Positions 4,276-59,600 of a DNA stretch of 64,000 bases are shown here, piece after piece (position 1 is the first letter of the stretch; each line of letters begins with the position of its first letter). The position numbers and the translations under genes are program-made. The notes below the pieces were generated by a model that was given only the letters and a program-made list of their open reading frames with translations, was not told the DNA's origin and made no database searches. This DNA is from Convolutriloba macropyga (Eukaryota). The DNA is taken from the NCBI RefSeq assembly GCF_964194025.1, contig NC_134478.1, positions 30,380,001 through 30,444,000 of the forward strand, in the 5' to 3' direction.

Positions 4276-6698
4276 ACCAAGAACTCTGGAAGCCATTCTA
4301 ATTGCCACACCCTGTCAAAAAAACAGTAATTGCAGCCTTGAACATTATATTGTGTCTGAAAACAACTATTCTTTGCCATACCAAAAATTATTCAGCTTAA
4401 ATATTTTTAAAAAACGTAAACCAACGTCGTAAAAGAAACAGTTCAGAATTGACATGATGTACGGAAGCAAATAAAAAACAATTACCACCTCATTCAGGAA
4501 CCAAATCTAAAAGCCACAAAGCATTAAATCAAATGAAAAAAACTTCACAGCAAAAATACTGAAATCTCGAAACCACAAAATTGTTGTATTAGGAACATCT
4601 GGAAAAGTTGAAAAACAGTTAAACATTTTAAGATGGACGAATACTAACACACTCTAAACTGGCCGGACTACTAAAATTGCCGAAAGAATTGAGGCTGTCC
4701 AATTGACTGTAAGACCCCAAACACACATTGGGAAAGCATGCAGATAGAATTCGTCCAAATTTAACTGAATTATAAAAAAAGAACCAAAATTAAGTTCTCA
4801 AAATAATAACATCTTGGCATCGCATAAATTTAAAAAATATCAAAAACTACTCTGTTGATATCTTTGTCAAAATGAATTCAAACTATTGCAATATATAAAT
4901 TTATCAGAAAAAAATCATGAAGGAAACAAAGGTAAAAAAAAACCCGCTTATTGCCAAAACTTCAACGCCACAAGAAACGCGGCAGATAATGATAAACTGC
5001 AATTTAAATTTTAAAAAAATCTTAAATTAAAAAAAATTAGCGCGGCAAATTGTTAAAGGAAATCAACAGCAAACAAAACTATTGAAAAGAATATAAGCAA
5101 AAGGCTAGTCTTTAATTTCATTCAACAATTCAGAAAGGCAGAGCTAATAATATTGTAGGTTATGCCGACAACTTAGCATATATATTGCATAAAAAAGGTC
5201 CCAAAATCTAGCATGTGGCGGTAACGGATACATTGTAAAAAAACTACAAAGGGCATCTTCATAAGTTTACAACTTGAAAATCCGATTTTAAAAAATTAAC
5301 TAGAACAAGTTGATTTCATTATCTATTATTGAAGGTTCAGAAAAATTGTTTATCCTTCATCCTCATGTCAACATAAAACAATGAAAATAATTTAAAGATG
5401 CCAAACGTCGAAAAATTTGCCAATAATGTCAAAAAAACGGGAAAAAATCAATAATGAAAAAATTAATTAACACAAAGTTCAAATACCTGACGGTGAGTAG
5501 GAAGGATGTTCATATTTAATCTAACAAAATAAACACAAAAAACTGGACAAAATCCTCCAAAATCTAGAATGTGCACTATCTCATATTAAAAAATAACTCA
5601 TGTCAAAAACAGACATTTAAGGTCACCATGTACACTCATTACGAAACGATTGGCTGAAACATTTGAAAAATTAATTAACAAAACTTTAAATGAACTGAAA
5701 AGTTGAGACCAATCAGCCTATTTTGAAATTGAAACGCATTGTTGATCTCTAGAAAAAAAACCCACTAAAATATCAATTACAGACTGTCACACATATTGAT
5801 GCAGCTTCAATTTAAAAACATTACTACAAAAAAACTAAACCAAAAGGAAACAATAGAGCCAACTAGACAAACAAACGGTTCTCTGTATGCAGCATTGATT
5901 AAAAAAACACATTTCAAAGTTGCAAAGTCATTGAATCAACTCAGCGCATCAACAAAAAATAGCTGAGAAGTTACTTCACATGACAATTTCACTCAGTTTC
6001 GCTTTCAGATCAAAACTGGGGCTTAGGATACTAGCCAAGCTCGATTTGTTGAGGCCAATTTTTATAGATATTAGGCAAAAATTTTCACCAAACATTTTGC
6101 GGAAATCCGAAAAAAAACAAGTGAAATACATAGATGTCGCTCAAAATCCGTTTGATGCACCAACGTAAGCGTGTCCCTAACTATTGTCTTTACATGAAAA
6201 TGAGTTTGAAAGCCTGTAAAATGTACTGTTTTTTTTTCAAACTATTGCATTTCTATAACCCTCGTAAACACCATGGAATATAATTTTGGCAATATTTAGA
6301 AGAAAACGAGTGGACAAGATGAAAAATGTTTTGCATTGTTCTAAATAGCTCAGGGCTATGGTATGGAAAAAAAATCGAGAAAAAAGCTGCAAACGCTCAA
6401 TACTTCTAAAACTTTAGACTGTGTTTTTGTAAGTTATTATCATGTAAAGACAATTTTAGAAACAACTTAACACTTTATAGAGTCCAGTATAGTCTGAAGT
6501 ACCATATATAAATGTTTTAATTGTTTTCGCCTAATTTCCACAGAATTTTAATTGGAATTTTTTGCCCAATAGCTACGAAAATTGGGTTCGCCTAATCGAG
6601 CTTTCGCCTTCCAGTTACATCCGGTAAAAATCAACAAACGGCCAATAATAGCCCCAACTTTCTCTTTGAGGCTGTTAATAATGCTGACTTATATTTAC

Positions 6699-13882: not shown

Positions 13883-16580
13883 TAAGAAAGGTTAACAGAG
13901 TTTGTTAAATAGTTCGAACACGCATTTCAAAACTTTGCCAACATACATTTATCACATCACTTCAGGTTTTGTATTTTTTCATTATATGGCAAACGATTTC
14001 GTGTTCTTTCAGAAAAAAAAATCAACTGCAACTTTCTCTTGGCGTAATTTTGCTACACCTACATCAACTACCCACCTTAATGAGAGCTGTGATGGATCTC
14101 TTTGGCAAACTAAACTAAAATTATTGCAAGGTCTTCTGACATAAAGAGGGCGCTATCATCATAAATTTTAAGAGGATGACTCGTGCGAGTCTGTGCGTTG
14201 CACAGGAAGTTACAATATAGTCAACGAAAAAAAAAAACAGAAATGATCTAAGCCATTGCTGCCAAAAAAGTGCACTATTAGCTTAAAAATGATCTAAGCA
14301 AAAAGTGCAAAGATGAAATAATGAATAAACAAAAGTTCATTCGGAAACTTTTCGGAACACTTTCTTAACCGGTAGCGGAACTTAACGCAATTTTCTTCCA
14401 TATAGTGATTTAAGATGCGCTTACACTTATTCATTTAATGCTATTGGAACTTGAAATGTTCTCTCCACTTTAAATTGGTCCACTTACAGTCAAATTAGGA
14501 TTTCAAAACATCTTTCAACGACTTTAATTCTTTTTCAAGACGAATTTGAAGAAAATTGAACAGGATTTTTTCGACTTTTCTTCAATTTGTCTTCTGATTT
14601 CTGTATAGTTATCTTATTGAAACCACCTGCTTGCAGTTTAGCCAACTTGATGCTCTGAAGTCAAATCGAATAATTCATTGGGCTTAGTTTCTTATAACTG
14701 AAGCTTGTCATCATTTTCAATCATTTATTACCTTTTGTTTATTGTGATAGTTCTCTCCGCTTTGTGTCTCCTTGTAATGAGAAAACATTCAATTTCGAAA
14801 TTTTCATTACAAACTTGTAGCGGAATGTTTGCTTCGTTGGAGTTTGTAGATAGTTCCAAACTAAAATGTTTTAATCTCAAAATTTGAAAAACGTATCTTC
14901 AATTTAGCCGTCTCTAATTTTAATTATTGATCAAAAATATAAATGTGAGACAATCTAATTTTTAAATTAAGATTATATTTTTCAAACGTTTGGTGTCGTC
15001 ATATTGCCTGCACTTTTCGAACGTAAGAGGTAACTAATTTTTATCTTTATCTATTTAGTTTGCTAAAATTAACCCACTGACCCTTCTTGATATTATTCTT
15101 CAATTCTTAATTTGAAAAAATGACCTATTTTTCTCAAAAGACTCTGGGTTCAATTTGTCATTAATGATGCAAATAGCTCCAGCAAGATTTCAAAAAAAAC
15201 ATTAAATGCGCAAGTGTTTCATGATATGTTACCAATGTCAAGGGTAAACAATTTCGTTAAAAAACGAAAAACGCACAACATTGGCAAAACTTCAAAAAAA
15301 CTGACACTCTAGCCTCAAATTACTGCTTTTCTTTCAACTTCACTCGATTTAACACTGCTCTGAGTTACCATTTTGAGTCCTTTAGGCCCAAAGAGAGATG
15401 CAAAGACAAAATCATTAAAAATGAAAATTTTACAACCATTACTTTTAATTTAATTTAAATCTTATTTACTTTTAATTTAAATCTAATTTATTCAAGACCA
15501 ACTATTTCTTGCAACAACTCACAAAAAGGCAGGACAAAAGTCTAGCAGGAAAACAGCTTGTCATATAGGAGATAAAATAAACGACTAGCGACGAGCGAAT
15601 TGCTCTCAAACTTCTATGAAAAGTCAAATGTGCCAGACAAAATATCATTCCAGCGAAAAATTAAAAAGAAAACAGGACCATTATAATTTCTACAAAATGC
15701 GTGTGAGAGCAATCAATCATCACTACACACTCCTTAAACGGTCAATAAACACCTCATCAACGAAACAAAATCAAAGAACTATCGCGGACATTATCAAATT
15801 TATTACATTATTAGCAAAAATATCAAATTTGTTGGAAGAAGCGGTGTTGGTTGTATGTTTATGCAGTGAGAGAGAGAGAGAGGGAGGGGGTAAAATTGGT
15901 AAGTTTTCATGTATTCGAACTTTAAACTAAATAAGCTTTCTTATGATAAAACTCTTTTCTACAAAGCGCAGTTTTTGATTTTGGCTGGGAAAAAATCGGC
16001 CAGCATTATAGTTCCTTATAATTTCATTTAAAATGTTGGGATAACAAGGTGTAGGTTAAGCAATCTTTTACAGAAAGACGGGGGACTAACAATGCCCAAT
16101 ACTTAACGCCCAGTTTTTCAAAGAGCATTTTTCAACTTAACTCCACTTATCTAAAAGCATTGAAATGCACTCTCAAGTTCCACGGAAATCAATACCAGGA
16201 AGCCTGTTCAGTAAGGACAGGAAAACATTCCCCTAAACTTTCTGAATTCAACACTGCAAACAAACTCATGGTTCGAATTATCAATTTTCAGTTATATGAC
16301 CGCAGAGGTTAATACGAGAGAAATCGTAAATGGAACTTATGAAAATCCTAAAACGAGCTTCACTGGAACTTATGATACGAAAACAAATCGTTTGCAACTT
16401 CTCTTGCGTAACGAAAACTTTCTAATGCTCTTATTCTCTGAGTATCACAATAACTTCAGCAAAAAATTGTTTCGCATTAAAATTTGCAAAAATTTCATTT
16501 GCATGAGCTAAACATCATATTTCAGCAGTTTTACAAAATCGAAAAAATTCAGAAATTTTAAGATTTCTCGTGTTGATCAT

Positions 16581-44500: not shown

Positions 44501-44700
44501 TGTTCCGACCGAAGTTGTGGGAAGAACTATATGCTCAGCTGGTTTCTTTTGTTTAGTCAATTTTGGCCAATTGATATATTTATAGTACAGAGTTGCGTGC
44601 TATCACTAGACAACCCGTCAAGCGTAGAGGGTAAAATTAAGATTTTTGAAAACTTTGTCTTTTTGAGGAGTTAATTAAAAGTTTTTCTGAACATTTCATT
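44501..44700 (+). mobile_element. HINE family B 5' fragment
   Basis: TGTTCCGACCGAAGTTGTGGGAAGAACTATATGCTCA and the following ~180 bp match the family B 5' end. Confidence 0.6.
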
Positions 44701-44859
44701 TTTCACTGATTTTGTTGACAATTTTAGCCATTTTTCCCACACTTTGGCCAACTATGATACTATTTTCAAAAAAGAACCGACAAACGTCGAAAAAAATTAC
44801 TCTCGAATGACAGGCGGGGCGTAAATTTTTCTTTATGGATGCAAAACATCAGACGAAGT

Positions 44860-44934
44860 TAGGGTTAGAACCCCGACCTCCTGAGTCCGGTTCCTTCCTC
44901 GACAGAGGCATTAACCACAACACTATCAGGGCCT
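44860..44934 (-). mobile_element. Possible tRNA-derived SINE head
   Basis: Minus strand GGCCCTGA-TAGTGTTGTGG (A-box-like) ... GGGGTTCTAACCC (B-box-like); no full cloverleaf. Confidence 0.3.
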
Positions 44935-45049
44935 TGTCCTCGTTTCTCTAAAATTTGCTTCTCTTTTGCAAAACTATTTCAGAGTGAAATGTTGTTGTTG
45001 TTGGGGATTTACAGTTTTCACTGAAGGGATTTTCGTCCCAGTCGTCGTC

Positions 45050-47856
45050 TTAGAAAATTGTCCTATTATTTCTGCAGATCTGACAGTCACAGCATAGATG
45101 CCAGCTACAGATGTTATTTTCGTCGAATCGCTCGTTTACAAACTTCCACGTGAAAATTAAAACTCGATTTTTAGGGCCTTTTTTCGTATTAAATTCAATG
45201 TATTTTTCTATTCGATTTGCTAGTCTGAATGTACGGAAAAAGAAATAATTTTTAGCCTTTTCAGTTCTGGTTTTCGGGAGCTTGAATAAATCATTTGTTC
45301 TCCCTTTTTCTGAATTTTGTTTCAGCATTGGTAAAAAGCTATCGTCTTCTGTCAATTTCGATAAAAGTAGAATGTCATTTAGTTGCATGAACATTGGTAG
45401 TGGTAGTATGTTAAGAAGTCTCAGTTGATTTGGATACGGTATGACTTTTTGTCCAAGGACCCATTTGACTACTTTCTTTTGAAATCTTTCAAGCTGTTGT
45501 AGCTCACCTCGGTTCGGATTTGTGCATGCAGAGCCATATAAGAGTACTGGCAAAATTAGTGACTTGTAGAGTCCGAGCTTGATCTCCTGTCTTACTTGAA
45601 GAGCTGTGTTTCGTCGAAGTAGGTAGAGTACTTTGTTCGCTTTTTTCAGTCGCTCTTCGATGTGTGTCTTCCACGTCAGGTCATGGGAAACATAGATGCC
45701 GAGATCTTTGATGACTTTGGATGACTCTAGTTTAGTGCCCATAAGCTCGTAATTTTCTGTTTGACCTCTTATGCTCAGCTTTGCACATTTGTCCATGGCT
45801 ATTTTCATTTTATTTTTGTTAACACACTGTTCAATACCAATGAGATCGTTTTGAACTTGCCAAAACGTTTTCTTCACTGCAAGAATTTTTACGTCATCCG
45901 CGAAGATAAATGGGTCAGAGAAAACTAACACATCAGGTAGGTCATTGATGAATATGCAAAACAGGAGTGGTCCGAGAAGAGAACCTTGGGGTACCCCACT
46001 TGTTACATCTAAAGTTTCCGATCTTGTGTTGTCTACCCGAATGAATTGTTTCCTATTGTCTAAGTAGTCAATGATAATTTCTAATAGGCAACCTCCCACT
46101 CTAATATTTGCAAGTTTTTGTACAAGCTCAAAATGCGGCACTTTGTCGAAAGCTTTGGAGAAATCTGTGTAGAATGCTACAATTTCGGTGCTTGATTCGT
46201 TATCGAGTGCGTCGTGAATTGATTTCAAGAGGGATAGCATATTTGTATTAACTGTTCGCTTTTTAACAAATCCATGTTGGTGTTCTGTTAGGAATTTTTC
46301 GAAGTTAGCGTATAAAGCTGAACAAACGCATTTCTCAAAAACTTTAGTGTCAATGTCTAAAAGAGACTGGTCGGTAATTTTCTACTTTCTGTCTGTCATC
46401 TTTTTTGTAGATTGGTGTCACAGCTGCAATTTTCCAGGAGTTTGGGATTTTTCTCAGTCGTTTTATCTGCTTGAAAAATACGTTTAAATTCTTACTTGTT
46501 TCGCGTGCTGTACGTTGGAAAAATGCAGGCGGTATGCCATTTGGGCCTCGCGACTTTGTGGCATCTAGCGAAAGAAGTATTTCTTAGATTGCTTTCTTTG
46601 AGATTTCGAAGTTTGTAATTTCAGGATTTCTCAATTTTACATCTTGTATACTGAAAGGAATTTTGGGTGAGAACACTGAGTGACTTGCTCTTGCATTTTT
46701 GTGCTCTGTTGATTTTCTTTGATTAGTAATTTTGGAAGGCTGGGTGATTTTTTCAGGCTTTTCAAGTGTTTGAAGATTGTACCGGTATTTCTTGCACGCA
46801 TGATTTTCTCCTGATATTCAATCCTGTCCAGTTCCGATGATTCTATCAATTGGTTTTCAAGTTTAAGAACTTCTTGTTTTTGATAACTAGTGGGTTTTTC
46901 GGATAAGAGTCGTTTTTGGGTTTAGAGTCTCTTCATGTTGTAAGAAGTGAAACTTGATATCCAGGGAGGTAGACTTTGTCGGTGTCTAGTTCTTTTGGGG
47001 ACGTGGACCTCGAATATTTGATCCATGTTCTGGTAAAATTCTTCGCACATGTTGTTTATGTTAGTGAAGCAAACTGGTTTGAAGGGTTCAGTACTTAAAA
47101 TATTATTTATGCTTTCGTAGTCAGCGTTTCCGAAACTTCTAAAATTTTCAAGAGTTTCTTTGGCGTCTTGGCGTGGACATTCTAATGTTAACTGGATTGA
47201 TTTATGATCCGAGCAGTTGTAAATTGAGGAAAATTTCTTGTCGAGATGTGCCACCAAATTACAATTTTTGTAAAATGCTACATCTAGAGTGTTCTGCACA
47301 GAGGTGGGAAGTTTATGATTTGTCTGTATAGGGATTCCTCAAACAATTCAATGACTTCGTGTTCTTCTTCATTTGTACTTGCTAGAGTTTTCCAGTTAAC
47401 ATCAGGACAGTTTATATCCCCACATATAATGGTCATTTTTGATTTAGGAATGATTTTAAGGAGTTTTGGGAAATCGTTAGCCTCGTAACGGTACGGGCTA
47501 GTTCTTGGGGGGTTGTAAAAGGCACAAATAAAAATTTAGTTCTCAGCTAATTGTATTTTGCAGACAAGACTAGAATCCGGTTGATCAGAAATGACTCTTT
47601 CGGAGATGAAGGAGTTCTTTATTGCTATGAGGGCGCCTCCGTGGGTATTTTTGTCTTGATCCATTTGTCTGTCTTGTCGGTAGATATAATAGTCATTTAA
47701 AAATAGTTCAGATGATGGAATGTTATCATTGAGCCAAGTTTCACAGAGACATATAACGTTGTAGTCTGAGTTTATTACAGCATTTGCAAACTTAATTCTC
47801 CTCTCTACGTTCACAAGGCTCCTTACGTTTAGTTGCAGAATGTTAACAAAACCTAG
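45050..47856 (-). pseudogene. LINE copy 1 ORF2: AP endonuclease + reverse transcriptase, interrupted
   Basis: ILQLNVRSL, CLCETWL, HGGALIA, SDH (APE); YTDFSKAFDKV, GVPQGSLLGP, FADD (RT); C-terminal CSWHLCCDCQIC. Confidence 0.95.
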
Positions 47857-48745
47857 TCAGTTTGACTTGGTTCCTACGGAGGCAATCTCCACTTTCGCAC
47901 CATCGTTGAATAGTTCTAAATTTCGAATTTTTAGTTTATCTCGAGGAACTCCCTCTGTCAACAGTTCTCTTCTCTTTTTCAGAATCAGGTTTTCTTTGAG
48001 GGCATCTTCTTTGCTGAGAGCTGGTAGCAAGTAAATATTTCTCTTTGCTAATTCCTCTCGATGTTCAATACTTTTGGCTAAGGCTAGCCTGGCTTCGTGT
48101 TCGTTAGCAACCGTTACTAAAAGAGTTCTTGGTTTCTTCCGTTCTCTCTTGAATTCACCTAGTCGTTTGAGTTCCTTCACTTCAGGCCTAACGCCTATTT
48201 CACTCAGTATTTCATTTACTTCGTCAGTTGTGGGGACAAGATTTTCAGCTTCTGTTTTGTTATGATCTTCAGGGATCCCTTGTATTCTGAAAATTTGTTT
48301 GATGTTGTCGACGCCTTTCTCTATCTTAATTAACTTTCCAAGTTTCCTATCTGTCTCCTGTGTGGATTCCACGGAGACCACGCAGCATACGTTTCATCAA
48401 CTTTTTCACAAGTTGTTTTGATGGCGGTTTCTATTTTTCTGTCTACAAGCTCATTCAATCTCTTTTCCATGTTTTTGAGTTGATTGCTAAAGTCCAATTT
48501 TTCTATCTTCTCAGTCATGTTCGCCATTGTTCTGCATCTTATGAATTTATCTCGCTCGTTTTTGTCCACGCATTTATTGCAGAGAAGCATAATGTTGTTT
48601 CCGAGATCTATTATCCCGTTGAGGGAGGCCACGGAAAGTCCTGTGCAAATTGTCGTCATGTGTATATGACAGTTGCAGGCAACACATGTATATGTTTTCT
48701 CTTGTGCCTGTATTGGCTTGTTACAGGTCTTACAATTTTTCCCAT
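47857..48745 (-). pseudogene. LINE copy 1 ORF1: PHD finger, coiled coil and RRM-like C-terminal region; two frameshifts
   Basis: CKTC..CVAC..H..C..CNKC; FRIQGIPE..KRLG..KPRTLLV; ATG at 48745 inferred from homology to copy 2 (MGRNCKTC). Confidence 0.85.
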
Positions 48746-49021
48746 TTGTTTCATAAGCTATGATCAATTCCAATTGAACTTAATCAGCAGGAATCTCACA
48801 GAACTTACTACGTTGACTTAAAATTTTGATCAAGACCAATTGTACTTAATCAACAGGAATTTCACAAAATAATTTGATGAAGACTTAAATTTTTGATCGA
48901 CTCCAACTGAACTGAATCAATAGGATTTGCACAAAAATTTGGAATAAAAATTGCGATAGGGCTTAACAAAAGCTAAACGATTTTGCTTAAATTGACGATT
49001 GGGACTGAAAACTGGTTTTGA

Positions 49022-49672
49022 TCAATTCCAATTGAATTCAATCAATAGGAATTTACAAAACCAACCTAGTGCTAGATTTACTAAAATTTTGGCTGCGTTT
49101 CGTTTCTTTTGCTTTTTCTTTCGTTGCTGTTGAGACGGGCTGTGTTTCTTTTTGATAAACGCTTTTAGATTGTCGCCGTGATTTCGTACAATAGTTAGGG
49201 TTTTGATTTCGAGGTGTGGTGCAAGATGTAGTTGGCTGTAGCTGCGAACAAGTTCTTTGTCCTTTTGCTTTCGCCTCGAGAGAAGGTCCTTTACGATGTG
49301 TAGAACAGGTATTCCTGTTCCCTTCAGCTCTTTGTAAACGTCTGGTGCCCCTTCTTTTACGCAGTAAACTATTCCAACTACTTTATGCTTGATATTCTTG
49401 ATTTCGTTCACAAGTTGTTCTGGGGTAAGTGGCTTTCTGGGGTCTTTGCGGGGGCTTGCCACAGAGTTATTGACTAGATCGTGCCAAATAATCAACTGCT
49501 CGTTTTTCGGTATCAATCGAAGTCGTTTTTGAATAATTTTAGACTTATCTTGAGCTCCTCGGTGAAGATTGTATCCTGGCTTCTTGATCACTTGTCTGGA
49601 TAATCGCTTCTTGATGTTTGTCCACCTCTCCAAGGAATGGTGAAGAGAACTTGCTCCAATAACAATTACCAT
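49022..49672 (-). CDS. LINE copy 1 ORF0: SGNH/GDSL-hydrolase-like protein with basic C-terminal tail, 216 aa, open
   Basis: VIVIGASSL (block I-like), PG (II), IIWHDLVNNS (III-like), SQLHL (V-like); homologous frames occupy the same position in copies 2 and 3. Confidence 0.7.
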   Translation of the reverse strand: MVIVIGASSLHHSLERWTNIKKRLSRQVIKKPGYNLHRGAQDKSKIIQKRLRLIPKNEQLIIWHDLVNNSVASPRKDPRKPLTPEQLVNEIKNIKHKVVGIVYCVKEGAPDVYKELKGTGIPVLHIVKDLLSRRKQKDKELVRSYSQLHLAPHLEIKTLTIVRNHGDNLKAFIKKKHSPSQQQRKKKQKKRNAAKILVNLALGWFCKFLLIEFNWN

Positions 49673-50906
49673 TTACAAACAAGGGCCACCACAGCTGCCC
49701 TGAACAAACATTATAACCTATTTAAAGCACTCGAAAGCACTCAAAATTCAAGATTAAATGCGTGAAAAAGTCACTCTAGAAGTCAAAGATTATTCTAGAA
49801 AAACGCAAAAATGGTCAAGCAAAAATTTTGCATGGAAAAGACACACGTTTACGATAATTGCTTCTTATTCGAGAGCAATCAATAATAAAGGGCTTCAGTA
49901 AACCTGAAACGATGTCAAGGTTATTTTTTGTCTCATCGTGGAGTTTCAGATAATAATATATTTGGATATAGATTTTTCGCTCTTGACATTCTGACTGACG
50001 AAGTATAATAATTGCGACGCATTTAATTTAATGGTGGATATATGTCGTTATCAAAGTTGGTCGGTGGGCAACTAATTATTTTGGTGACATTCTCAAAGTA
50101 GTCATTACAAATTAAAAAATTATCAATTAGAGGTTGTTTTGTTACGGAGTTCAAAACAACATCATTTTGTCGACTCGTAACTTAATCTTATCCCGACATC
50201 TGGTTTTATAGCTTGGGAATCCCCGATTTGCCCTCTTAATTGAGATTCAAAAGTGAGCGCAAAGGTGATTTGTTTTAAACTTCTGTGCTCACTCAGGAGT
50301 TTAAAATCTAATCGAAAGTAAATAGAGCCCACTTGTTACCTCAAAGACATTACAAATTGAGATTTTGCTTGAAAACGGGATAGATAATCATTTTTTGGTG
50401 AAATTAGTTGTTCACTTAAGTTTTTTCACACTTAATAAATTGCATTAGAGTTGATCTCGTGTCTGTCATATCTTTTGTTTGAGTGTTAGTTTTACTTAAA
50501 TGAAACCGTTTGATCTCATAGGTATAAACCCCGTTTTTGTAAAGACATCTGTCCTTTTAAAAGAATCCATAGAGGTTATATAACAATATAAACTATTCTT
50601 TAAAAGCAATATATCTGTGCAGTAATTGGTAGTCCATTGACATAAGATTGCGGAAAAACGGTTTCGGAACATTAGGTGTCATTGCACATTAGCGAGCAGT
50701 CTTGTTTCAACTGCTCACGTTTCAGTTCAAGAATAATGATGCTCAAGTTGATAAACGCATCTAAACAGCAGATTACCTAACTCAGACACTTGTCCATTGT
50801 AGGCTCAAAGGATAATATATAGCTTCAATAATGCTACAAAATACAGTATTGCAAAAATTATTTTTTGGTGGGTAGCGGGGGTCTATCCCAATATACCAAT
50901 AGCTTA

Positions 50907-53900: not shown

Positions 53901-55470
53901 CTTGTTTTCAGAATGAGGTTTTCCTTCATTGCATCTTCTCGCGAGAGAGCAGGCAGGAAGTAAATGTTTCGCTTAGTGAGATCTTCCCTGTGTTCATGAC
54001 TTTTCGCCACGGTCAGGCGTGCATGATGTTCGTTCGCTACCATGACCAGAAGGGGTCTAGGTTTCTTTCGCTCGGGTTCGAATTTGCCAAGTCTTTTGAA
54101 CTCGAGAACATGTGGTTCAGCTCCAATCGTAAACAGTATTTCGTTCAGTTCAGAGTTCGTTGGGACAAAATTTTTGGATTTAGATTTCGATGGGTCTTCT
54201 TTTAACCCTTGGATTCTGAAACTTGGGTTGATATTGTGATTTGACTTTTGGGCCTCCGCATTTTGTGCTCTTTTGGTTTTCCCGCTCGTGGTTTTGTCCA
54301 CGGCGACGACAGCTGCGTATTTTTTCTCCCCTTTGTCGCAAGTGGTCGTCATTGCTTCTCCAATTTTAGAATCGACTAGTTCCGTTAGTCGCTTTTCCAT
54401 GTTCGTTAACTTCTCACCTACGTCAAGGCTTTCCAGTTTCTCAGAGACACTTTCTAGCGCGCGTCCTCTGATGAAATTATCTCACTCGTTGTTTTCTATG
54501 CAGGTGTTGCACAGTAGCATCGCATTCATTCCCAATTCTATTATTCCATTAATAGCAGCAGGTGAAAGGGCGGTACATTCAGTGGTTAGATGCATGTGGG
54601 TGTTACAAGATACGCAGAAGTAAGTTTTCTCTTGGTTCGGTATACCTCGCTTGCATGTTTTGCAGTTTCTACCCATGACGTGAGATGTTCTATTTCAGTT
54701 GCTAGGTTCATTTTGATGTGTACCAATAAAATTAATTACTAGGTACTTACAAAAAAAACTTAGAACTGACGACTGGTATGAAGTTGTAGACTGGTTTTGA
54801 TCAGTGCCAAGGAACTTAATCACTAGGACCTCACAAAACCAGGAACAACTTCAAAAATGAAGCACTTACTTAGTACTTCTTCGCTTGCTCTTTCTTCTTC
54901 CTTCGTTGGGATTGCGACGGGCTTTGTCGTTTCTTGTTGATTGCTGACAAATTGCTGTCGTGTTTCTCGACAATAGAGCGGGTTTTAATTCCAAGGACTG
55001 GTTTTTGATGGAGTTTTCTGTATTCGGTTATCAGTTGTCGATCTTTCTGTTTTTGTCTCGACAGAAGGTCACGAACGACGTTTAGGGTGGGAATTTCTGT
55101 TGCCTTTAGCTCCTTGTAAACGTTGGGAGCTCCCGCTTGTTCACAAAAAACTATTCCAACAACTTTTCAATTTAACTTCTTTATTTTGGTGACTAGCTGT
55201 TCCGCAGTTAGGGGGCTTCTGGGGTCAGACTTCGGATTGGTCGTGGAGTTGTTTATCAAATCGTGCCAGAGGACGACTTCCGCCGATTTGGGAAGTCGAT
55301 TGATTTGATGAGAAACAATCTTCAACTTATCTTTCGCTTGAGGATGCAGGTTTTAGCCACACTTCGTGATGACTTCTGGAAGTTGTCGTCTCTCTCGGAT
55401 ATTTCTTCCCAGGGCTAGCTCCAAAGATATATACCATTTAGAAAGGGCTACCACGGCTGCCCTGATGAGA
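50907..55470 (-). mobile_element. LINE copy 2 (related family), near full length, degenerate
   Basis: (AAC)n tail 50907-50925; ORF2 50978-53785 (FSKAFDKV, PQGSLLGP, FADD, CTWQTFCDCHVC); ORF1 53786-54676 (PHD); ORF0 remnant ~54870-55437. Confidence 0.92.
54870..55437 (-). pseudogene. LINE copy 2 ORF0 remnant
   Basis: MVYIFGAS.., VVLWHDLINNS, KVVGIVFC..GAPNVYKELK, DLLSRQKQKD, KLH and basic tail; colinear with copy 1 ORF0, with stops. Confidence 0.8.
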
Positions 55471-56699: not shown

Positions 56700-59600
56700 G
56701 CAAGCGCATCATATGCAAATTACAAAAAGGGACGTTTTTTCATGTTCGCGCAACCATACGCATAAAAAACATCTTCATTGTAATATCAATCAGAGCATAC
56801 GAGTTATGGCAAGTTCATCCGGAGTCAAGAACAGAACTCCTGATTTTAAATACTGTTCTGAGAAACGGTCACAACCTGCTACAACTCGTCAAAAAGGTTC
56901 ACAGAAGCCAAACAAAAGGCAGAAGGATAGGATCAAGAAACGTCAACTCGCCGAATCGGAACCCTAACTGTAAGTTTTATTTATTAATGAATCCGAAGGT
57001 TTACCTCGTAACTGCAAAAGTATTCAGTTTTTTGGAAAAAACTGAATACTTCTGTTCTCTCTCTCAAAGTTCACTTATCTAGTGAATCCGGAGGCATCGT
57101 CTCGGAATCGCAGAGCACTGAACACAAATGAGAGACCAATTGTCCCCCTACTCGCCATCCCGTCTCGCATCCATATACAAAAAATGCCACCACGCGAAAC
57201 TATCTGCTCAGGCTGTGACTGCGAAATCAGCAACAGGGAAGCTGTTTTCAATTGCATTGGGCGCAGAAACTCAATGCATACGAAACCCGATTGTGTGGGA
57301 ATCTGCGAAAAAGCCATCTTTGGTTTAATGGAAATTAGTCAAAATCTTCTGAAATTCTGCAACATTTGTGTCAGATATAATCAAAAATACAAGACCCTCT
57401 ATAAAACTGTCAGCAACCAAGATCCTGTGGGAGCCGACACCTTCGCTGAAAAAGTGAAACAGGGTATGGAGTCAATCGAAGAAAAACGCAGAGAGAAGAT
57501 AAGCTGTTCTTAGCGTTGTCGATGAAATTAGGGAAAAGCTGCCTGCCTTTGGATCGGAAATGAAGAAGACACCGGTTGCAGAAGAAGTCCCTCACATGAA
57601 ACAGAAAGAGGTTGTCAAAAAGCCAACCGCTAAGGAATTGTTCGACGGCATTCGACTCAGTGGAATCCCGGAATCGGAATCAGAAAACGCAAGAAAGAGA
57701 CTGGAACACGACTCATAAGAAGAAAAAGCTCTCCTAAGCTTTCTTCAACAGGACTGCCCAATCACTGATCTGGTGGGAAAAGGTACTTTTGACAAAGAGG
57801 AAACAATAAACCCTTATTATCAAACGGACAAATGAACAACAAAAGAGACCTGTCTTACTTTCAGCTCGAAAGCCAGCTACCTACGAACATAAGGTCTATT
57901 TGAGCCGGGAGCCGAGCCAGGAGGAACAACTTCTAGAGAATGCCGCATTGAAAATGAAACGTCAGCTGCTGGACAAAGGAAAGCAACCCATCGTGCTACG
58001 AATACGAAACTTGCAGTTGCAAGAAAAAAGGCACTGAGTGGAAAATTGTAGAAATCGAAGAGGGCACCAGCTCCCAATGACTACGATCAACACAGACAAA
58101 ACAACCTACTCACGTTCAACAACAGAAGCCTAGTTGACTTTAAGTTGAAGCCTAGTAAACCCGATGATGACCTATTTCGTCCCAATTTTGTAATCTACAG
58201 GAAAAACAAGCGCAGCGACAACAACCACAAACGTGGTGGTGTCTTAATAGCAGTAAAAAATCACATAAACAGCAGTATTTTTAAATTGGAGTCCGACGCG
58301 GAAAGTATTACTGTTAACCTCAACACCGTGACTGGGTCAGTCTTGATCAACTGCACCTAAAATCCCCTCGAAAACAGTTTTATCGTTTTTCGTTTAACTG
58401 CCTCAAAACTTTCCTTAAAAAACGCAACGAGCAAAATGTGACTGCTTCGGCAATTACCGGGGACATCATTTTCCAACATACGAATTGGGAAAGTTTGACA
58501 TCAGAAAACACTAATGAAACGACCATACTTGACTTCCTAGAACATTCCAACTTTGAACAAATTCTCCCATGCCAAAATTCACGTAGTCTCGACGTTCTAC
58601 TAACGCAAGATGGTGAACGGACGGAACACTCGGCTATCGACAAAAAATTGGAAGGATTCTACTCCTTGTCTGATCATCATCTGTTGAAGACAAAAATGCG
58701 GGACTACTGCTAAATTTTATTTCACCTTACACAAAATAGAATAGAACTCCATTAACAAGCTGATTGACGAAATTGATTTCAACCCCTACTGCTATAGTAA
58801 TGTTGATGAGCTCGTGCGACAGTGGTATGTCTGGATACGCGAAATAATCGACAAATGTGTCCCTCGCATAACTAAGCGTAGATCAACTCTTTCCGCGTGG
58901 ATCTCGCCAAGCACATCTCATCACATGAAAGTTTTAGTGACGACCAAGAAAAATTATGAAGACAAACCAAACCTTCCTTTTCTGTTAAAAACTAAACGCA
59001 AAGAAACAGCACTGAAAACTGAGATTGAAAATGAACCAGCCTGTTTTGAAGAAAATTTCTTTCGCAGCAGGTGAAAGTCAGATATACAGAAATATCTCAA
59101 GTCCCTACACAAAATCAAAGTACTCCCTCAAGATATATATCTCGCAATTGTTGATGATCATAACCAAATCAAAGTCGCCTGCACATCTGGAGATCAAAAA
59201 AAGTGAACTATTCAATAATTTCTTTTCCAACGTTCTCAACGTGGAAGGTCAAATGTCTCTGGACCCAGTGTACAAGAAAAAAAAACTAATTTTTATCAAA
59301 CTCTCGGAGGATGAAATCAAGGAAGCTATTTCAAATCTGGATGCAGACAAAATTTGTGGACCAGATAATTTTTGTAACAGCTTCCTGAAAAAACTCTTGA
59401 ACCTCTCAAAAACGCTTCTCCTTGTCTTTCAAGCGTGAACCAACAAAGGATCTTTCCCATCCCAATAGAAAATTATCGAAGTGACACCCATCTATAAGGA
59501 GAATGACAAAACCGATAAAAGTCAGTACAAGCCGATTCGCCTGCTCACAAACGTGTCCAAAGCTTTTGAAAGAGTCATTTTCCAGCACTTGTATCCAATC

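Follow-up and report, generated by a model that had tools for sequence, protein, structure and literature searches.

We found that ORF0, an open reading frame carried by LINEs of Convolutriloba macropyga, is under purifying selection and is a real, selected accessory gene. The account of it that we favour, and that we hold to be probable, is that ORF0 is a gene of about 196 codons with an SGNH-hydrolase fold, that it is the first of the three cistrons of a CR1-like LINE and that its product is a Ser-His esterase or a lipid-handling enzyme.

Three LINE copies with ORF0 in the window

The window analysed here is a stretch of 64,000 nucleotides of the C. macropyga genome (contig NC_134478.1, positions 30,380,001 to 30,444,000), in which protein matches located three LINE copies within 44.5-61 kb. 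Copy 1 (44547..49719, minus strand) spans 5.2 kb and is full length but dead, with a 5' UTR, ORF0, a spacer, ORF1, ORF2 and a short A-rich 3' end. Its 5' end at 49719 is shared to the nucleotide with at least 20 sister copies from other parts of the genome, its 3' end at 44547 is the point where contigs of DNA runs diverge, and no target-site duplication was recognised for this copy. The 5' UTR (49673..49719, minus strand) is 47 nt long and contains an inverted repeat, rich in G+C, shortly ahead of the ORF0 start codon. ORF0 proper (49085..49672, minus strand) consists of 196 codons. In its product, the predicted SGNH-hydrolase fold (residues 1 to about 150) leads into a long helix and then into a tail rich in K and R. 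ORF0 is followed by a spacer (48757..49060, minus strand), by ORF1 (47857..48754, minus strand, with ATGs at 48754 and 48745), encoding a Cys-rich PHD-like zinc finger and a C-terminal domain, and by ORF2 (45050..47817, minus strand), encoding an AP-endonuclease and a reverse transcriptase and lying in pieces in this copy. The ORF1 of copy 1 is frameshifted just after its ATG and again near 48381; the A-run that follows this ATG is one base shorter than in 20 of 21 sister copies. Compared with the collapsed contigs of its family, copy 1 has indels near 48381, 47305, 46680 and 46361. Contig depth in the DNA runs suggests some 15 copies of full length in the family, besides a few hundred that are truncated at their 5' end.

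The original prediction had placed an intact ORF of 216 aa (49672..49022, minus strand) 5' of ORF1 in copy 1, and this ORF is indeed found ahead of ORF1 and ORF2. Its length, however, is not that of the family: a stop after codon 196 (C-terminus ...NAAKI) is present in 14 of 24 sister copies, and since TTA replaces this stop at 49084-49082 in the window copy only, its last 20 residues (49022..49084, minus strand) are a read-through into the spacer repeat that ends at the next stop (49024-49022). The family length is 196 aa and the excess results from the loss of a stop codon in a dead copy.

The other two copies carry ORF0 as well, as had been proposed from the same stretch. Copy 2 has a colinear but degraded homologue with stops and frameshifts (54837..55454, minus strand; tblastn 55454-54837, 49% identity), followed on the same strand by spacer motifs at 54794-54838 and 54710-54754, by ORF1 at 54673-53792 and then by ORF2. 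Copy 3 retains a C-terminal remnant that includes the conserved His (56801..56947, plus strand) and that was matched by the family HMM with an E value of 5e-10; a run of Ns lies upstream of this remnant and ORF1 lies downstream of it, from about 57205.

Several features were seen at the ends of the element. The inverted repeat of the 5' UTR (CAGGGYAGC..GGTKGCCC, window 49680-49702, minus strand) stands 8-10 nt before the ORF0 ATG and occupies the same position in L040-L042 and L033, being conserved though the leaders otherwise differ. We also considered a shared spliced leader at the LINE 5' ends and ruled it out, because the 5' leader differs between families. The DNA directly upstream of the LINE 5' end (window 49720-49800) is a very high-copy repeat. 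At the opposite end, the contig word depth of the last ~120 nt of the LINE (window 44548-44667) is several hundred times that of the single-copy flank and far above that of the rest of the element, a possible sign of a SINE partner or of massive 5' truncation.

ORF0 lies upstream of ORF1 and ORF2 in all LINE loci examined

The proposal that ORF0 belongs to the element rather than to flanking DNA was confirmed by its position upstream of homologous ORF1 and ORF2 in all LINE loci examined. The loci with the order ORF0-ORF1-ORF2 are copies 1-3 of the window, L040-L045 of this genome and L033, L034, L060, L062, L064 and L065 of other assemblies, minus-strand BEL and LINE loci having been judged from partial loci. 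Among L040-L045, every readable locus with a 45-62% identical ORF0 has a PHD-like ORF1 and an APE/RT ORF2 downstream, and L034 is intact, its three ORFs being 211, 333 and 942 aa long. Some of the other assemblies belong to this species itself or to a sister species, with proteins that are 93-95% identical. A fragment in this genome (L048:4-189) has 93% identity with ORF0 from the ENA locus L034, so that at least one 'other' assembly comes from the same or a very close species.

The ORF2 of L034 gave only Exo_endo_phos and RVT_1 matches in Pfam, with no RNase H, and the ORF2 pieces of the window match RVT_1. We class the carrier by this domain content of ORF2, which identifies it as a putative CR1-like (CR1-group/Jockey-superfamily) LINE. 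The description of ORF1 as a PHD protein holds in part: ORF1 is Cys-rich and PHD-like, but its Pfam matches all stay below threshold (PHD, E 0.0056; zf-RRPl_C4, E 1.5e-5; C1_2, E 7.6e-5). A comparison of ORF1 with the PDB by sequence gave no match.

ORF0 is found far beyond what chance would produce. A first-look search returned at least 2724 ORF0 candidates in the C. macropyga genome, and a public protein library contains 892 ORF0 clusters at 50% identity, nearly all of them of about 190-215 aa. The public gene calls begin at the first beta-strand, the longer ones resulting from upstream read-in.

Some LINE copies carry ORF0 units in head-to-tail arrays at their 5' end. Eight intact ORF0 genes of 198-202 aa, with a period of about 1124 bp, precede a single ORF1 and ORF2 in an ENA assembly (L033:3382-11874), and two or three units were found at L041:1954-5090 and at several loci of the C. 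macropyga genome itself (e.g. C11:23810033-23815591 and C2:64508079-64511110). These arrays recall the monomers repeated at the 5' end of other LINEs, except that the unit repeated here is a gene.

ORF0 in BEL/Pao elements and a canonical GDSL gene at its position in related LINEs

In BEL/Pao LTR retrotransposons, a 40%-identical branch of ORF0 precedes gag, as seen at L036-38 in this genome and at L031, L032 and L063 in other assemblies; in this genome the branch is represented by many intact ORFs of 215 aa. In L031, 299-bp TG..CA LTRs at 5963-6261 and 15383-15681 enclose ORF0, gag (DUF1759) and pol (Pao_retrotransp, integrase), and the same BEL/Pao arrangement was recognised by Pfam or tblastn in L032, L063 and L036-38. 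On maximum-likelihood trees of ORF0, the LINE and BEL labels need 2-3 changes, and an AU test does not reject a single BEL clade (p 0.22). In L031, moreover, a 48-nt tandem repeat with at least 11 units (L031:6275-6987) stands between the 5' LTR and the ORF0-like gene.

The ORF0 slot of a LINE can also hold another gene. At L059:1429-3396 (C3:39961131-39964526 in the C. macropyga genome) and at L066:8001-12525 (elsewhere), a canonical GDSL gene, which matches PF13472 above cut-off and has the motifs (G/A)DS, GGND and DxVH, is located upstream of homologous PHD-like ORF1 and APE/RT ORF2. Either the two genes descend from one ancestral ORF0 and have become unrecognisable as relatives, or the slot was filled on two occasions. 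Further multi-copy ORF families matching Lipase_GDSL_2, mostly intact and with open frames of 177, 205, 228 and 168 aa, were also encountered at many loci of the C. macropyga genome (e.g. L058:1408-1938 and L056:1324-1947).

The spacer between ORF0 and ORF1

ORF0 had been proposed to be a cistron separate from ORF1, and in every LINE family checked it was found to have its own stop codon and to be separated from ORF1 by a spacer of 140-335 nt, which measures about 335 nt in copy 1. This spacer is free of AUGs in four of the six LINE families measured, namely those of copy 1 (327 nt, up to the start of ORF1), L034 (308 nt), L042 (141 nt) and L043 (146 nt), in which about 6, 6, 2.6 and 2.1 AUGs, respectively, would be expected. 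The AUG-free spacers of the LINEs suggest that ORF1 is reached by resumed scanning or by reinitiation. The BEL copies of this genome have long spacers with many AUGs, so that reinitiation cannot be a general rule.

The spacer also contains a conserved 46-nt motif, of which copy 1 has four copies on the minus strand (49015-49060, 48890-48936, 48823-48869 and 48757-48803); two to four copies lie directly 3' of ORF0 in copy 1 and in related LINE families. Its mean column identity between families is 83%, while the ORF0 proteins of these families are only about 50-57% identical. RNAalifold gave weak support for a hairpin in this motif, with covariation at 3 of 11 pairs and a consensus energy of -3.4 kcal/mol, and a covariance model of the motif found no match in the BEL loci or in the more distant LINE families. 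We had also considered that one and the same gene-plus-hairpin cassette might be present across LINE and BEL elements, which is unsupported at the sequence level, the motif being absent from BEL.

ORF0 is predicted to have an SGNH-hydrolase fold

The likeness of ORF0 to SGNH esterases, initially proposed from the letters of the sequence, was well supported by comparing a predicted model with known structures. The AlphaFold2 model of ORF0, built from an 18-sequence alignment, has a mean pLDDT of 86 and a pTM of 0.75 and displays the three-layer alpha/beta/alpha architecture of SGNH proteins over residues 1 to about 150. When this model was compared with 48,161 PDB representatives using VIA-align, SGNH/GDSL proteins occupied 48 of the 50 top rows (Z 11.2-7.1), with 137-164 residues aligned in the top matches. 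A second look at the Foldseek candidates showed SGNH/GDSL entries in each of the 50 top rows, with Z up to 11.3 and 156 of about 170 residues aligned. Foldseek searches of the PDB and AFDB agree with this fold, and the neighbours of ORF0 in the ESM Atlas partly carry PF13472.

Sequence methods did not reveal this relationship. Pfam, including Lipase_GDSL and Lipase_GDSL_2, gave no match to ORF0 and 116 relatives at E <= 0.1, and searches of the PDB, by sequence and with the 18- and 116-sequence profiles at E <= 10, returned chance matches only, the CR1/L2 esterases (e.g. 4c1b) being absent from them. Using hhalign, the ORF0 family gave non-significant scores with each of three partners, namely TesA of E. 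coli, five canonical GDSL ORFs carried by TEs of this genome, and the L059 family in an alignment of 10 sequences, and an hmmsearch of the TE-borne canonical GDSL ORFs with the ORF0 family HMM found nothing. Altogether, the model indicates that ORF0 has an SGNH-hydrolase fold that is visible to structure comparison but to no sequence method.

The putative active site of ORF0 keeps Ser, Gly, Asn and His

Conservation was assessed on an alignment of 116 ORF0 representatives with a mutual identity of at most 50%. The residues S8 (105 of 116), G33 (103), N68 (97), N69 (108) and H149 (108) are conserved in this alignment, W63 (111), H64 (108), D65 (107) and E155 (101) are also kept, and R106 is likewise among the best-kept polar residues. 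G6-A7-S8 directly follows strand 2-6, where the block I nucleophile is positioned in SGNH proteins, and G33 and N68 come after strands 2 and 3 with an SGNH-like spacing. The placement of N68 on the Asn of GGND by hhalign had a low probability, and block III may work in another way, given the higher conservation of W63-H64-D65 compared with Asn68. Counted from the Ser, the Gly, Asn and His of ORF0 stand at +25, +60 and +141, compared with +22, +52 and +139 in ZfL2-1 (S143, G165, N195 and H282).

The structural alignments begin with residue 1 of the ORF0 model on residue 3 of TesA and residue 40 of PAF-AH, so that Ser8 falls on Ser10 and Ser47, which we take to be the respective nucleophiles; they end with model residues 171 and 170 on TesA 179 and PAF-AH 216, so that His149 falls on His157 and His195, presumably the active-site His of these enzymes. 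This mapping assumes that there are no gaps at the ends of the alignments.

Both canonical Asp residues are missing. The Asp of GDS is an Ala in ORF0 and the Asp of DxxH is absent, the residue three before His149 being variable (S/K/R/E/L), so that at best a Ser-His dyad is left. The original prediction had described the motifs as altered (GAS for GDS and SQLH for DxxH), which is correct for the two Asp positions, but they are not simply degenerate, considering that Ser, Gly, Asn and His are kept. This combination points to a Ser-His enzyme more than to a purely binding protein, as judged from the model and the alignment. The earlier preference for a lipid- or RNA-binding accessory protein over an esterase must then be revised: because only the two Asp positions are lost and Ser8 and His149 are conserved, a Ser-His esterase is at least as likely as a pure binder.

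A different possibility, which we consider rather unlikely, is that ORF0p is not an enzyme but an RNA- or lipid-binding adaptor resembling OSK, whose basic tail, and perhaps the spacer motif, would serve to mark the RNA of the element. The OSK domain of Drosophila Oskar (5a4a) was among the fold matches of ORF0, with a Z of 8.6, and it shares with ORF0p an SGNH-like fold, a connection to RNP biology and the lack of the canonical Asp residues. The K/R-rich tail that had been noticed in the window copy is a conserved feature, with R184 present in 92 of 116 relatives, and the 46-nt motif, which related LINE families repeat two to four times immediately downstream of ORF0, would also suit such an adaptor. 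The OSK domain is not known to carry the catalytic Ser and His, whereas more than 90% of the ORF0 members, for all their divergence, retain Ser8 and His149, which would be unexpected if catalysis had been abandoned. The spacer motif, moreover, is found neither in BEL copies nor in the more distant LINE families in which ORF0 is retained, and support from covariation for its hairpin is weak. Another argument in favour of a non-enzymatic role comes from ZfL2, whose retrotransposition is reported, in a 2026 review that refers to Kajikawa et al. 2012, to be apparently independent of esterase activity.

ORF0 is a separate gene under purifying selection

If ORF0 were joined to ORF1 by splicing, frameshifting or read-through of its stop, the product would be an esterase-PHD ORF1p comparable to type IV proteins. 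The ATGs of the two ORFs are in the same frame in copy 1, 927 nt apart, and esterase domains are otherwise known inside ORF1p, but we regard this possibility as very improbable: a stop codon and a spacer stand between the two ORFs in every family examined, nearly all public gene calls have a length of about 200 aa and begin with the first beta-strand, BEL/Pao elements have this gene ahead of gag and not of a PHD protein, and no joined form was present in the contigs of four DNA runs, a search for RNA runs with this stretch having found none.

Between families, the synonymous sites of ORF0 are saturated and dN ranges from 0.37 to 0.8. The omega values are 0.15-0.22 among young BEL copies and 0.53-0.59 among L040-42, and they reach about 0.7 among sister copies of the window family, as expected for decay after insertion. 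That ORF0 might be a hitch-hiking or decaying passenger without a present function is hardly credible, for although the window copy and many sister copies are broken and the latter show this higher omega, intact ORFs persist across families with saturated synonymous sites, the 892 clusters share conserved motifs, the fold is predicted with confidence and the gene takes the same position in two retroelement classes.

Discussion

Esterase-type ORF1p of CR1, L2 and RTEX LINEs were reportedly recognised by Kapitonov and Jurka in 2003. SGNH esterases are found inside the ORF1p of these LINEs, in most cases after a coiled coil or zinc finger, and the structure of that of ZfL2-1 is available (PDB 4c1b; Schneider et al. 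2013, PMC3905857). In the literature that we surveyed, esterase-type ORF1 is known within the Jockey superfamily from vertebrate groups only; the PHD-type ORF1 is classified as type III, its PHD+RRM subtype being reported from the CR1 clade only. ORF0 resembles the type IV ORF1p of ZfL2-1 in being an SGNH module 5' of the APE/RT ORF of a putative Jockey-superfamily LINE, with a similar Ser-Gly-Asn-His spacing and a presumed role in lipid- or membrane-linked RNP biology. Unlike type IV ORF1p, it is a separate first cistron with its own stop, its product has neither coiled coil nor zinc finger at the N-terminus, and a PHD-like ORF1 is present beside it; it also lacks the catalytic Asp and is invisible to Pfam and to sequence searches of the PDB.

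A stand-alone accessory ORF of the SGNH/GDSL kind that is common to unrelated retroelement classes has a precedent in the GDSL esterase ORF3 shared between bdelloid Vesta LTR elements and Athena/Penelope-like elements (Rodriguez et al. 2017, PMC5408684). That ORF3 lies 3' of pol, has canonical catalytic residues and belongs to LTR and Penelope-like classes, whereas ORF0 forms a highly divergent family that lies 5' of ORF1 or gag in LINEs and BEL/Pao elements. The closest parallel in position is the GDSL gene of L059 and L066, which shares with ORF0 the slot, a similar length (about 180-200 aa) and the fold class, but which keeps GDS/ADS, GGND and DxVH; neither sequence nor profile comparison detects a similarity between it and the ORF0 family. 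In the literature searched, we came across no report in which a gene of the esterase fold stands as a first cistron of its own before a PHD-like ORF1, or before a BEL/Pao gag.

If ORF0p is a Ser-His esterase or a lipid-handling enzyme, as we favour, its role could be that of the esterase domain inside the ORF1p of CR1, L2 and RTEX LINEs, meaning that it would contribute to a membrane- or lipid-linked assembly or transport of the RNP. Its basic tail may then hold the protein on RNA or direct it to the nucleus. ORF1, in turn, would be translated by ribosomes that resume scanning after ORF0 and cross the AUG-free spacer.

We put forward more tentatively, and would not yet bet on it, that in this animal lineage ORF0 is a portable esterase-fold cassette that has been exchanged between LINEs and BEL/Pao elements, and that the slot in related LINEs was filled by two SGNH families without detectable similarity to each other.

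The esterase domains of LINE ORF1 proteins are among the least understood parts of retrotransposons, their role in lipid or membrane biology having been inferred from a single structure. ORF0 offers an unusually clean object of study in this respect, since it encodes a small protein of its own, is retained by many families that look active, also occurs in an LTR class and has a counterpart in the canonical GDSL gene of the same slot. Surveys of ORF1 types that are based on Pfam overlook this esterase-fold family of about 900 clusters. The tricistronic LINE layout with its AUG-free spacer also bears on how the downstream ORFs of LINEs are translated. If the exchange of a portable cassette proved true, the LINE mRNAs of this genome would be truly tricistronic, and a lipid- or ester-directed activity would be strongly and repeatedly selected for retrotransposition in this lineage, for example for the assembly of membrane-bound RNPs or for entry into germ cells.
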